A stretch of 38,253 nt of DNA from Octopus bimaculoides. Its lineage: Eukaryota. Location: contig NC_068981.1 in assembly GCF_001194135.2 (NCBI RefSeq), forward strand, positions 118,028,178 through 118,066,430. Direction: 5' to 3'. Under the pieces are notes generated by a model. That model searched no databases. It worked only from the letters and a program-made list of their open reading frames with translations, and had not been told where the DNA came from. This document shows, in pieces, positions 7,301 to 28,300 of this stretch. The position numbers and the translations under genes were made by a program. How positions within the stretch are numbered: position 1 is the stretch's first letter; every line of letters begins with the position of its first letter.

Positions 7301-10300
7301 TGAGTGTATGTATGTGCGCGAGAGACTGTGAATAACACAGCCCACGCAACCCAACAGGCATATTTTGTTGTTAGGATATTATTACCTGGTTTGAAGATGT
7401 TGTAAATATGCTGAATCCAAAAAGGAAATCATTTTTTTACTATCACGTCTGGATTTCAAGATACGAAAGTACCTCAATCATCAGTAGTTGATATGCGTGG
7501 ACTTTACGGTGGTAAATTTTCTTTTGGGAAAACAAAGTGGACACATCAAAATATCCATGTTTTTTATGCGTGGGGTCAACAGAGCTAAGGAGAAACATTA
7601 GGTGGTTAGAATGGCAGCAGCGAAAATTAAATTCAGGGTTTTTAACGTGGTTGAGGAGCTTTCAGTTCAACCAGGATAAATGATCCTACTTCCAGTCCAT
7701 ATCAAACTTGGTGTTATGAAGCAGTTTGTTAAAGCTCTGGATAAAGATGGACCATGCTTTCAGTATATCTACTGCATATTTCTCATTCTGAATAGTGAAT
7801 AAAGCTGTTTTAATTAAAACAATGAAATTTTCTGGATACAGTATCTAATTTTTTTGACGTAACGTTAATAAATACATGTCATTTTTCGGATTCTGTGATT
7901 CAAAAACTCTCTAGTTTAGGGCTAAAACTTCTGGAAACAGAGATTGTTTTTTCGGCATATGTGATTATTGTAATGGCTCTGTCGCCATTTAGAAAACAAT
8001 TTAATTGTACAATTCTCTTTGTAGAATATACTTACGTTATTGGCCGGAGCAATGGGTTTTGCAGCTGTGTTAGCTGATCTTGTGTGTGTAGATGTTACAG
8101 ACCCTTTAAGAGCTCAACTCTTCTCAACAACAGTAATTCTCGCAGGAGTTGCTACAGTCGCTCAAACAAGTCTTGGGACACGGTGAGTCTACTCTTGACA
8201 ATAATAATTTATGTAAAGAAAGAAGTCTAATTGACATTACGATCGTTTCCATAATCAAGCGATTTTCTACTTCATATCATTTACGATATTTTGTAATACA
8301 CTAAATATATCGAAATATGTAATAGTATTACGATCACCCCGCCGTCAGTCTGTCTGTCTCTGTCTCTCTCTCTCTCTCTCTCTCTCTCTCTCTCTCTCTC
8401 TCTCTCTCTCTCTCTCTCTCTGTGGTACAACTTCAAAATGATTTAAAGAATATTTCAAAAGTATATCTATTCCTATATATTGCAGTCTCCCAGTATTCCA
8501 AGGACCGTCTATAAGTTATCTTCCACCAATGCTTTCCATCAGCCGATTAGACAACTGGAAGTGCCCACCAAAGTACCAAATAGGTAAACTGTTGATAAGC
8601 TTTCTTTGTATACCAATAAATGCCATGTGCCAAGAGAATATATCCTTTTTTTTTATTTCTCTGACTATGAACTAAACATTCAAAAGTGTGTAGTTGCCCC
8701 TCTTCTGATTTACTTTCTAAAACATTCGACACGGGTTGGAAGCGTTCTGTTTAATTTTTGTATCCTGAAGTTCACTCTGATGTCCTCTTATAATCATTTA
8801 TCCTTTATCTTTTATCTTTTACTTGTTTCAGTCAACAGGATTGCGGCCAGGCTGGAGCAACGCCTCGAAGAATTTTAGTCGAAAGAATAGTTCCCAGTAT
8901 TTATTTTCTTATAACCTGGTACTTTCATGAACCCCTAAATTTTTGACGAACCCCTAAATTAGCGTATATATATATATATATATAGTAGATGAGAGATATT
9001 TGAGCATACGTATATAGGTTTCCGCAGTAACTTATATATGTATGCATGAGAATAAATACTTAAAACAAAACATATAAATTCGTACATGCACTGACTCGAA
9101 ATACTGCACATATACATAGAAACATGCAGAAAAAACCCTGTTAGTGTTGTTGAAATGCAAATGAAGGACCGTGGATCTAGGTTAGAAACCGGCTTTTTTT
9201 CTATCTTCAAGAAATTTTAAAATAAAATTGAATAATGATATACATACACACACATACTTACATACAAGCACAATCACACACACGCATACACACATACATA
9301 CATATATATGAGCATGTCTATATATGCAACTATATGGATGAGAATACATACATAAAGCAAAACATAGACATTTTCACATATACATACATATATACAAAGA
9401 AAAATGCCCTGTTGTTGATGTTGAAATTCCAATGCAGGAGCCTTAAATCTAGTTAGAAACCGGCTCCTTCTCTATTGGCAAGAAATCTTGAAATAAAATT
9501 GAACAGTGACATACATACATTAAGGTACTACCTCTCTATGAGACATGACGTGGTCGCAAATGCAGTATACAATGTCATTCAGGAAAAGACAATCCTGGAA
9601 TAAATACAGAAAATCCCTTTTTGTTGAATACGTTCACAAATTCAAGCCCAAGAAATACTGGTGGAATATTCTCATCAAAATATTTGTCAAGTGTAAGCAT
9701 AGCAGATATGTTGTTTGGGCGGGGACAAGAAAAAGTATGTACCGTAGCGGAATCAGCTATTCTGCTGACGTGAATATCTCTTTAAAAATCAAAGAGAAAG
9801 AAGATAACTCTGGATAACTGTTTTGTATCCGGATTACAAATTTATATTTCTATCAACAATAATCGGAGCACTTGGCTTTGTAAGTAAATGCTTAAATGTC
9901 AGTGTGGATAAGCTTGGACTTTCAGAAAAAGAAATCAACCAACCGATTCGCACATTACAAATACAATGAATAAGTGGATCAATAAAATTATACAAGACTT
10001 TTTTCTCAGATTTAAAATATGACGTTGTTTTCTTTAACTACCTTCCAATGACGGGAGTCTGTATCGTTGTTGGAAACCAGCTCCTTCTTCAGAGGAAGAA
10101 TTTAGATGATTAGATACAGAAGATTTCCTCATTCGTAAATAGCTATGGTAAAATTAGAATGTTACCAAAAAATGTTGAGTAACTGAACCGATAAAACTGA
10201 GCATGCCTTCTTCGTTCTATAAAATGATGACTATAAGATCCATATGTGTTACGTCTTTTACGAATGTAAATTTTCATATAATTTCAGATTACATAAACGG

Positions 10301-25300: not shown

Positions 25301-28300
25301 AACCCGTGAACAAACTGAATTGAAACCACTGATCAGTATCTGTATTATAGTGTAAACGGTAACGTGGTTGTCCGGCAACCGATAGTCTTGAGGCGAATCA
25401 CTTGTAACATTATTCTGTACTAGAATAGTGCTTAATAAAGTTTATATTTAGATCTTGGCAATTAATTCATAACAGGTCATATTGTCATGTATAAAGTTCC
25501 AATTTTATGTCTGATATCTTAAAATGAAGTTAAGGGAAGTGGGCAGATTGTAAAATATTACGGAGTTGGACAAAATGTTCTGTTTAACATGATTACTGCT
25601 CTTTACTCAGTTAGTTCAGTTCCAACTGGCCTCAATTTTGCTTTTCATCCATGCGGTGTCGATGACATAAAATAACTCTCAAGAATCATGGTCGTAAAAC
25701 ATTCATGACAGCATTCAGCCGAATTTAAAGCTATACGTTTATGTCAGAAATTGGTTTCTTAAACTGGATAATATTTTCTTCTATTCTCTTTTGAACTTAC
25801 TTTTCAGGTCAGTATGGACCACCTAAATTCGAAATAGCTATTTTTCTCGGATTTCTCCTATCGACAATAAATTCAATTATTGAATCCATGGGTGATTACT
25901 ACGCTGCCTCAAGACTATGTGCCGTACCACCACCACCGAGACATGCAATTAACCGCGGGCTGTTTTCTGAAGGTCTAGCGGGTGTACTAGCTGGATTTAT
26001 GGGTGCCTCCCATGCAACTACTTCGTACAGCACGCACATTGCCCTTATTGGTATAACAAGGGTAAGACAAATTTATTCATGAATGGTAACAGAATTGCGT
26101 GCATTTTATTTGAATTGGACAAAAAACTTAGTTTTATTTCCTTTGAGAAGGATCTACTAAATGAGCCTCTACATAATGTCTTGTCCTGCAGGTAAGGATA
26201 TACATTTCAAATCATCTTACACTATTTTGCCAAATGAAGATCACACTGAATCATAACATATTAGATCCATTCTACCCGTCCCAAATTATGCTGGAAGTTA
26301 TGACTTTGATAAAAATTCTAATCTAGTAACGCTAACATAGGAGTAAACAAAAGTACGTATAAACACACATTCATATATAAATATTTATTTCAAACGCCAA
26401 AAATATAAAATAGTATACAATCTAAGGAAAAGATTTCGAATTTACAGTGAGGTTCGAATGGAAAAACAAAATATGAACGTCATTGTCTGTAGAAACACAT
26501 CTGGTTATACTTCTGTGTTAATAATTTCGCCCGGCCTTTAGGAGCAAAGGACATAAAATAGAGCAGGAAACATCTGATAAATGCCACCTGCATTCTAGTA
26601 TTTTAGATGTTCGAACTCAAGTGCCATTAGGAGAGGAGATATTATATTTATAATAGAAGATTATCTATATGTGTATGAGCATATGTATTTTTCTGTGCTT
26701 GTGTATGTGGGTGTGTGTTTGTGTGTGTATTTATATATATATATATATATATATATATATATATATATATATATATATATATATCCTTATATATAAATAT
26801 ATAATTATATATGTACATGCACACACATATGCACTAACAAACAAATTTAATGAGAAAGATTGAGAAGATGTAACTAAAGATAAAACTAGATGTTAGGTCG
26901 AAACTGATTTTAATATGATGTAAGGAATAGGCAGGGATTTGAGATCTAATAAAAGACATTGCTAGCGATAGGACGTTGATCTGTTACAGAAAACAATATG
27001 AAGTATACGGGTGTATTATATCGTTTAAATCTTGAATAGCACTGCGGCCACGTTAGGGCACTGCTTTAAATAGTTTAGTACAAACACAAACACACATACA
27101 CTCGTATATTTTTTATTTGATTTATTCATTAGATTGCAGCCATACTAGGGCACCGCCTTGAAGATCTTTAGTTGAGCGATTCAAATCCAAAGCTTATTTT
27201 CTTAAAGACTGGTACTAAACATCTTTGGTCTCTTTTGCAAAACCGCTAATCTACGGGCACCTAAACACTCCAACACCGGTTGTCAAATAGGCATTTCTGA
27301 AGTTATGTAAATACATAGATATGTAAGCAGCTAAGTACATGCGTAAGTAGGAAGGACAGTAGGTATCTGAGCATAGATCAACTTTGATGAACAAATTCAG
27401 TTTGAAGATTGAGTAAAAATCCGACCAAAATCTTTTGAGTGGATTTGGTAGGCGCAGAGTCTATCGTATATATATATAATTATTATTATTATTGTTATTA
27501 TTATTATTATTATTATTATTAGGGAAAAGAACCAAAGTTTATGAACTCATCAATGAAAATCGACTGTCACATATAGAAAAAAATTATAATTAAAAGTACA
27601 ATAAATAAGTATAATATAATGCAAAGTAAATATCATAAGATCAAGATAATATTATCTTGATCTTATAATATTTACTTTGCATTATATTATACTTATTTAT
27701 TGTACTTTTAATTATAATTTTTTTCTATATGTGACAGTCGATTTTCATTGATGAGTTCATAGACTTTGGTTCTTTTCCCTAATACTATATATTAATATAT
27801 GTTATACTGTGAAACTTAATTTAATTTTAATTTTTAATAAATTGATTTTAATTGAGTTTTTACCTGTAATTTTGCATTATTATTATTATTATTATATATA
27901 TATATATATATATNNNNNNNNNNNNNNNNNNNNNNNNNNNNNNNNNNNNNNNNNTGTGTGTGTGTGTGTGTGTGTGTGTGTGTGTGTGTGTGTGTGTGTG
28001 TGTGTGTGTGTGTGTGTGTTTGTGTGCGTTTTAAGATCCGCAGATTAGGCCGCAACGTCTAGGCTTTCTCGTTGGTTCAGGCAGAGATAGTTGAGGGGTT
28101 TGGAATAGATTCCTGTTGGAGTTCAATTACTATGTGTAATGCTCATTTCATTTTCAAAGATTTATTTACTGGTATTTTATTTTATGAAAACTACTCAGAC
28201 AGCATTTTATAACACGTCCAGTGACTTCACCTAATCCTCAGACTTTGCCCACAGGGCATAACACGCTAAAACAGGACGACATAATAATAGAAAATTCGAG

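Follow-up and report, generated by a model that had tools for sequence, protein, structure and literature searches.

Transporters of the NAT/SLC23 family are recognised by a Gln-His pair in the first transmembrane segment (TM1) and by an Asn in the signature of TM10, two diagnostic features reported to be indispensable to UapA, XanQ and the SVCTs for catalysing transport. The window considered here, that is, the whole stretch of 38,253 nucleotides analysed from contig NC_068981.1 of Octopus bimaculoides, is eukaryotic DNA, rich in AT and broken by three assembly gaps, and contains a gene of this family in which TM1 reads Gln-Asn and the TM10 signature carries His. The gene is already annotated in Octopus bimaculoides. 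Its product is P0001, "solute carrier family 23 member 1 [Octopus bimaculoides]", a protein of 599 amino acids which the eleven exons reproduce in exact translation, each exon being 100% identical in tblastn; all introns are of the GT-AG type and the reading frame is intact. Residues 47-474 match Pfam Xan_ur_permease (PF00860) with E = 1.3e-69 and 235 bits, against a cut-off of 27. Taken together with the comparisons below, the gene is predicted to be functional and to encode a non-canonical SLC23/NAT member belonging to a mollusc-only subfamily. Its elements are listed below.

1208..34829, plus strand: SLC23/NAT-family gene, 11 coding exons, exact translation to P0001
1208..1360, plus strand: exon 1, M1-Q51, ending in TM1 A-V-Q (Q51 = CAG, 1358-1360) and followed by the donor GTAAGG
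8025..8182, plus strand: exon 2, remainder of TM1, TM1-TM2 loop and TM2
8025..8027, plus strand: Asn52 codon AAT, first codon of exon 2, in place of the TM1 His (human SVCT1 His51, UapA His86)
8486..8583, plus strand: exon 3, beta-strand and TM3 half-helix, with Pro111, Ser112 and Ile113 at the positions of mouse SVCT1 Ser117, Ala118 and Phe119
10288..10376, plus strand: exon 4, extracellular loop, where model confidence is low
11620..11801, plus strand: exon 5, TM4-TM5
13520..13628, plus strand: exon 6
22130..22286, plus strand: exon 7
25808..26061, plus strand: exon 8, TM8, TM9 and the start of TM10
25882-25896, plus strand: TM8 motif E341-S-M-G-D345, in exon 8
26032-26061, plus strand: altered NAT signature T391-H392-I-A394-L-I-G-I-T399-R400, in exon 8
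26035..26037, plus strand: His392 codon CAC, in place of the NAT-signature Asn (UapA Asn409, mouse SVCT1 Asn392, human Asn385)
29177..29447, plus strand: exon 9, remainder of TM10 to TM13
31100..31195, plus strand: exon 10, TM14
34597..34829, plus strand: exon 11, cytoplasmic C-terminal tail and stop codon

A preliminary description of this DNA had read AAT at 8025-8027 as Asn52 and CAC at 26035-26037 as His392, in the local sequences A-V-Q-N and S-Y-S-T-H, and both codons are found as described, in the window as well as in the exact translation P0001. It had also taken each replacement to be a single-base change, and one substitution per codon indeed suffices for TM1 His to Asn and for TM10 Asn to His. 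Its further point, that A-to-I editing could restore neither His52 nor Asn392, follows from the genetic code, by which A-to-G changes convert AAT to D, S or G only and CAC to R only.

One question then is how secure the Gln-Asn sequence is, since Q51 and N52 lie on different exons and the reading A-V-Q-N consequently rests on splicing inference. The two residues are separated by intron 1, a 6.66-kb phase-0 intron with two runs of N; exon 2 opens with the N52 codon directly behind the acceptor, where the preceding triplet, read in frame, is the stop TAG. The pair would be illusory if either codon had been misassembled or misannotated, if the junction across this gapped intron were wrong, or if the gene were a pseudogene, explanations to which the runs of N and the inferred junction lend some substance but which we find hardly credible. 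In spliced transcripts of relatives (L001, L009-L012) the Q and N codons adjoin as CAG-AAT, the exon structure is matched in O. vulgaris, Argonauta and Mytilus coruscus, and three independently assembled octopod genomes agree; an intact frame, GT-AG introns and a ratio of nonsynonymous to synonymous substitution rates (dN/dS) of 0.10-0.23 argue against decay. The phase-0 intron after the TM1 Gln is itself common to octopus (8022-8027), Argonauta (L007, about 3188), Mytilus coruscus (L008, about 4343) and Tegillarca (L004, 9986-9991), and its acceptor reads in-frame TAG in octopus, Argonauta and Mytilus coruscus.

In O. vulgaris (L006) and Argonauta hians (L007) all eleven exons are present with identical boundaries, and Asn and His are both kept. 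The codon for residue 52 is AAT in O. bimaculoides, AAC in O. vulgaris and AAT in Argonauta, and that for residue 392 is CAC in both Octopus species and CAT in Argonauta and Sepia; these synonymous differences at both codons imply that the amino acids are held and not merely the bases. By the Nei-Gojobori method dN/dS is 0.23 against O. vulgaris (0.16 for residues 31-530) at a synonymous divergence (dS) of 0.14, and 0.10 against Argonauta, where dS, at about 1.4, is near saturation, so that the elevation which would have betrayed decay is not seen. More distant relatives, P0005-P0008 (42-47% identity), are encoded without introns on RNA-seq assembly contigs about 2 kb long; the transcripts of P0005 and P0006 read CAG-AAT contiguously and encode the TM10 His as CAC or CAT, and one of the runs carrying P0006, SRR23936169, is from a larval transcriptome study of Sepia esculenta (PMC10571815). 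The concern, raised with the original observation, that either residue might fail to recur in orthologues or transcripts is therefore answered by O. vulgaris, by Argonauta and by the spliced transcripts of relatives, Sepia esculenta included. Because the swapped pair is kept in octopod genomes and in Sepia transcripts, it is older than the divergence of octopods from decapodiforms, and in cuttlefish at least it is expressed. Q-N and x-H occur in 6/6 full-length members of the cephalopod clade, down to 46% identity, and only eight sites (N52, H392, F84, S168, Y318, A349, G374 and L395) are fixed in this clade while differing from a canonically conserved residue. The swap is conserved in octopods and a cuttlefish and held under purifying selection. 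Separately, the annotated O. vulgaris isoforms X4 and X3 (P0003, P0004) skip exons 3-5 (369 nt, in frame), X3 additionally skipping exons 7-8 (411 nt, in frame), although the genome L006 holds all eleven exons intact; the products would be without TM3-TM5 or TM8-TM10, and may represent real transcripts or annotation artefacts.

The family membership of the protein is equally apparent from its fold. The AlphaFold2 model has a mean predicted local distance difference test score (pLDDT) of 82.5 and a predicted template modelling score (pTM) of 0.81, with a confident membrane core; its best Foldseek matches are human and mouse SVCT1 (8jez, 7ytw), with a TM-score of 0.87 normalised to target, followed by UapA and UraA, all at probability 1.00. 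Model and matches alike display the 14-TM, 7+7 inverted-repeat fold with core and gate domains, and identity to SVCT1/SLC23A1 (human 8jew, 8jez; mouse 7ytw) amounts to 33-34%. In the alignment octopus Asn52 corresponds to human SVCT1 His51 and mouse His58, and His392 to human Asn385 and mouse Asn392, human His51 being the counterpart that had been proposed; TM1 Q-H of SVCT1 stands against Q-N, and TM10 S-S-S-P-N-I-G against S-Y-S-T-H-I-A. Octopus E341, D345 and S390 align with the identically numbered residues of mouse SVCT1, whose Na1 ligands are the side chains of E341, D345 and S390 together with the S388 carbonyl; all four ligand positions are identical in octopus, an agreement in residues which does not by itself demonstrate that sodium binds. 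SVCT1 and the octopus protein thus share the TM8 Glu and Asp and the TM10 Ser of Na1, and likewise a T-T/S-S segment before the signature and a C-terminal 'YxFP' tail. The ascorbate contacts of mouse SVCT1 include Ser117 and Phe119, and its Asn384 hydrogen-bonds Ala118 of the TM3 loop; octopus has Pro111, Ser112 and Ile113 at Ser117, Ala118 and Phe119, and so differs from SVCT1 at both of these ascorbate contacts, which become Pro and Ile. The position of mouse Asn384 is occupied in octopus by His384 (26011-26013), a second Asn-to-His replacement, in the unwound region of TM10; octopods and many mollusc paralogues ('GxGHATT') share this His, and the Sepia-type P0006 and P0008 have Asn.

Measured against the motifs of Kourkoulou et al. 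2018 (PMC5972032), the octopus protein is a non-canonical NAT, one which keeps the TM8 motif (E341-S-M-G-D345) and has neither the TM1 nor the TM10 motif. In place of the Gln-His of transmembrane segment 1 it has Q51-N52, and the TM1 variants given in that study are only Q-Q, T-H and Q-Met/Ile, Q-N being absent. The canonical TM10 signature, [Q/E/P]-N-x-G-x-x-x-x-T-[G/R/K] (PMC5972032), is altered at positions 1, 2 and 4 (Thr, His, and Ala for Gly), with the Thr and the Arg/Lys retained. The expectation of an intact frame with E341 and D345 in place is borne out by the 599 residues, in which both acidic residues are present; the protein is not canonical in its other features, signature position 1, the signature Gly and the TM3 contacts all differing. 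Before the signature Asn position, the Ser-Ser-Ser-Pro specific to ascorbate in SVCT1/SVCT2 is replaced by S-Y-S-T; the S-Y-S-E/Q of SVCT4/SNBT1-type nucleobase transporters, in which the acidic or amide side chain binds the base, is likewise absent, octopus having S-Y-S-T and the rest of the clade S-Y-S-G/N/S. The most numerous close matches (35-38% identity) are of the SLC23A4/SNBT1-like type, fish 'xan_ur_permease domain-containing' proteins with S-Y-S-E-N, which share with the octopus protein the T-T-S-Y-S before the signature (PMC9233358); they differ in that the cephalopod clade has T, G, N or S for the nucleobase-binding signature Glu, His for the Asn and Asn for the TM1 His. A partial parallel is offered by vertebrate SVCT3/SLC23A3 and the fungal UapD-like proteins, orphan transporters in which, likewise, at least one of the three diagnostic motifs is missing, but SVCT3 keeps the TM1 motif and lacks that of TM8, the reverse of the cephalopod clade (PMC5972032).

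The preliminary description placed the two positions in a shared hydrogen-bond network, and for UapA this holds. A homology model places N409, H86, Q85 and T416 in one hydrogen-bond network and identifies H86-N409 as a critical polar interaction (PMC3405029; PMC4162363), and by cryo-electron microscopy (cryo-EM) Asn409 binds the His86 backbone, holding TM10 in place, its contact with the His86 side chain in the apo state being mediated by a water (bioRxiv 10.1101/2024.08.23.609436). Mutants of UapA at either site are cryosensitive, with a lower Vmax and an unchanged Km (PMC3405029, PMC4162363, bioRxiv 10.1101/2024.08.23.609436), and Asn409 has been described as irreplaceable. The comparison with the Aspergillus nidulans protein is one of homologous positions, His86 and Asn409 linking TM1 and TM10 in the core domain; UapA, a proton symporter for xanthine and uric acid, is only 16-17% identical to the octopus protein. 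In the literature searched we found no report of a reciprocal H86N/N409H variant of UapA, and in the searchable literature no description of a Q-N/x-H variant of NAT/SLC23; neither the TM1 His nor the signature Asn is taken up in the cryo-EM papers on mouse and human SVCT1, and the UraA papers are uninformative on the pair.

To see how the two positions vary across the family, 465 homologues were aligned to one profile and both columns were read in each sequence, the set coming from a pair of word-indexed searches, an exhaustive search over 1.84 billion cluster representatives and a further one started from a diatom protein; a profile search with the mollusc paralogues returned mostly canonical vertebrate proteins and few informative additions. 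Among the 362 sequences with both states known the combination His,Asn (TM1, TM10) is dominant and Gln,Asn is common in invertebrate paralogues. The TM1 His had been regarded as highly conserved, but in animal paralogues it is not near-invariant, Q-Q being found in about 24-27 of roughly 90-100 clusters. TM10 His, on the other hand, occurs in four lineages only (the cephalopod clade, Mytilus coruscus, a diatom and Tegillarca granosa), and throughout these 362 homologues it is paired with TM1 Asn, a single bivalve gene, that of Tegillarca, excepted.

The Mytilus coruscus protein CAC5418810.1 (P0137), with TM1 Asn and TM10 His, was checked in the genome, where it has the same phase-0 intron; its closest kin are Gln,Asn genes of Pinctada, Mizuhopecten, Biomphalaria and Elysia, and it differs from the octopus protein (36% identity) in its separate origin, in its mollusc subfamily and in its TM8 motif, D-S-I-A-D. 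The diatom paralogue P0267/P0269 has TM10 His, and its TM1, in a separately called upstream open reading frame, reads Q-N; its closest kin are canonical His,Asn diatom NATs, among which it has a separate origin, and it is 29% identical to the octopus protein. Since the kin of the one are Gln,Asn and those of the other His,Asn, the Asn/His pair arose at least three times independently. The diatom contig L005 (ENA ERZ25042306) carries this single NAT gene called as two open reading frames, 9225-9587 and 10001-11395, with an intron between them, and bears in addition a large RVT_2 retroelement frame at 12829-18576 on the minus strand. For the two fragments with TM10 His that were without TM1, TM1 Asn was predicted, rightly for the diatom and wrongly for Tegillarca (P0152), in which an unannotated TM1 exon reads cag|CAT and TM10 His therefore stands with TM1 His. 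The annotated Tegillarca protein KAJ8311399.1 has 399 amino acids and begins at an internal Met, whereas the TM1-TM2 exon (L004 9989-10150) extends upstream, so that the N-terminus of the gene model is truncated.

With lineages approximated by clustering at 50% identity, the counts of Asn with His, Asn with another residue, another residue with His, and neither are 3, 4, 1 and 54 (Fisher p = 0.0035), or 2, 4, 1 and 54 without the cephalopod seed (Fisher p = 0.023); in other words, TM10 His is accompanied by TM1 Asn in 3/4 independent lineages, when TM1 Asn is present in only about 7/62. The covariation that had been anticipated is in this measure visible, and in mutual information it is not, for the two columns rank an unremarkable 29th and 77th of 467, a statistic dominated by the frequent TM1 His-to-Gln change, which occurs with a normal TM10 Asn. 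The association of lineages is suggestive and not conclusive, because the sample is non-random and the test is not phylogenetic.

These figures bear directly on a rival account, namely that in a quickly diverging mollusc subfamily, whose pocket was remodelled, both sites were freed from constraint, and that Asn and His became fixed independently, whether by drift or each for its own reason, and thereafter persisted, the mirror image being coincidental. In a neighbour-joining tree the cephalopod clade (100% bootstrap) falls within a mollusc-only subfamily (98% bootstrap), the other members of which have the following TM1,TM10 states.

Littorina and Plakobranchus: His,Asn
Solemya: Gln,Asn
two scallops (P0122, P0280): Asn,Asn
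Mytilus: His,Thr
Ylistrum: His,Ala
Tegillarca (P0152): His,His

Seven state combinations are thus represented among the lineages of the subfamily, among them His,Thr and His,Ala with neither Asn nor His in TM10, and the existence of Asn,Asn and His,His genes, the commonness of Q-Q with a normal TM10 Asn in invertebrate paralogues and the low rank in mutual information all agree with uncoupled change. What such an account explains less readily is that two further lineages, unrelated to this one and with Q,N or H,N relatives, came to the identical Asn/His combination, that TM10 His keeps company with the otherwise infrequent TM1 Asn, and that both residues are invariant in the cephalopod clade despite 46% identity and synonymous turnover at both codons. 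We consider it unlikely on balance that the two changes were uncoupled in this way, although this is an explanation to be taken seriously.

We lean, if only slightly, towards the interpretation of the octopus pair as a co-adapted brace between TM1 and TM10 in what is probably a Na+-coupled orphan transporter. Before the octopod-decapodiform split, the TM1 His was replaced by Asn and the TM10 signature Asn by His, both within the moving core domain, and the swapped pair would most likely still form a polar brace between TM1 and TM10, directly or through water, if Asn52 and His392 make the contact that their UapA equivalents make. The core would remain both foldable and mobile, for each of the two side chains can act as donor and as acceptor of hydrogen bonds, and together they are no larger or smaller than before. 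The surrounding pocket was remodelled (TM3 Pro-Ser-Ile, a signature position 1 which varies between T, G, N and S, and a signature Gly changed to Ala), with the SVCT1 sodium-site residues E341, D345 and S390 retained, and the two features together would point to a carrier that is probably Na+-coupled and whose substrate is neither ascorbate nor a classical nucleobase.

Several observations weigh against this interpretation. Both sites are labile in the mollusc subfamily of the octopus gene, where the TM10 Asn has been lost with the TM1 His retained, and the TM1-TM10 brace seems to be dispensable or replaceable there. Both single-step intermediates, Asn,Asn in the scallops and His,His in Tegillarca, are extant as intact annotated genes, and Asn,Asn is found also in a fish (P0053) and two further sequences; because such genes exist, neither change strictly requires the other. 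The alteration of further pocket residues (Thr at signature position 1, Ala for the signature Gly, Pro/Ile for TM3 Ser117/Phe119) and the modest ranks of the two columns in mutual information point the same way, and the sample was gathered by Asn/His-seeded searches and assessed by a Fisher test that is not phylogenetic, with only three independent Asn/His lineages. The suggestion in the preliminary description of a natural second-site suppressor accordingly survives in part: the pair recurs in Mytilus coruscus and in the diatom, but the Asn,Asn and His,His genes and the lability of both sites in the subfamily tell against a strict dependence. The swap itself is real, old, selectively maintained and recurrent, and affects two positions known to interact, the mutual dependence of the two changes being unproven.

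Alternatively, the His in TM10 could have acquired a role of its own, His392, possibly together with His384, serving as a proton or pH sensor or as a substrate ligand, with Asn52 merely permissive in that it makes room or removes a second titratable group. His392 lies at the start of the TM10 half-helix, adjoining the substrate and Na1 site, neighbouring substrate-contact positions are altered too, octopods carry the second Asn-to-His change at residue 384, and L395, one helical turn past His392, is also a clade-fixed change. Such a role is nevertheless rather improbable, since Tegillarca has TM10 His with TM1 His retained, so that removal of the TM1 His is not required, and residue 384 is Asn in two members of the clade.

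Returning to the co-adapted brace, a bolder form of it would hold that the brace works in either orientation, His/Asn and Asn/His being interchangeable and the latter reached at least three times (in cephalopods, mussel and diatom) via viable single-step intermediates; shifting its only titratable member from TM1 to the mobile TM10 half-helix would then change how the elevator stroke is coupled to pH or to ions. We put this forward tentatively, as a conjecture with less than even prospects. Were it true, it would amount to a natural double-mutant cycle on two residues deemed essential over thirty years of UapA and XanQ genetics. The recurrent exchanged pair would in any case be evidence, drawn independently from evolution, that the two positions work jointly, and supplies a ready design for a double-mutant cycle in established laboratory systems. 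The gene would likewise mark a mollusc-specific subfamily of orphan transporters, the substrate of which is probably new. The overall picture of the NAT/SLC23 family is unchanged, and the relevance of the pair is mainly to specialists in NAT/SLC23 and elevator-type transporters.

In intron 6, on the minus strand at about 15318-19136, there are frameshifted open frames resembling a decayed reverse transcriptase of the LINE (long interspersed nuclear element) type, for example 'NYRPISCL' in 16464-16754, and the intronic minus-strand open reading frames of the window have no significant match in Pfam. Downstream of the gene an open frame of 154 amino acids (36150-36614, minus strand), likewise without a Pfam match, may be a mobile-element remnant or no gene. 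Intron 10 contains a 215-bp unit in 1.8 copies (31900-32282), and long microsatellites, (ACAT)n, (TTA)n and (AC)n, are numerous in introns and flanks. The gaps and microsatellites are located as follows.

1472-2068 and 6204-6781: runs of N (assembly gaps) in intron 1, between the Q51 and N52 codons
27914-27954: run of N (assembly gap) in intron 8
972-1084, 7108-7210, 10439-10521, 11019-11119, 14544-14652, 15178-15272, 18211-18321, 19135-19212 and 35232-35342: microsatellites

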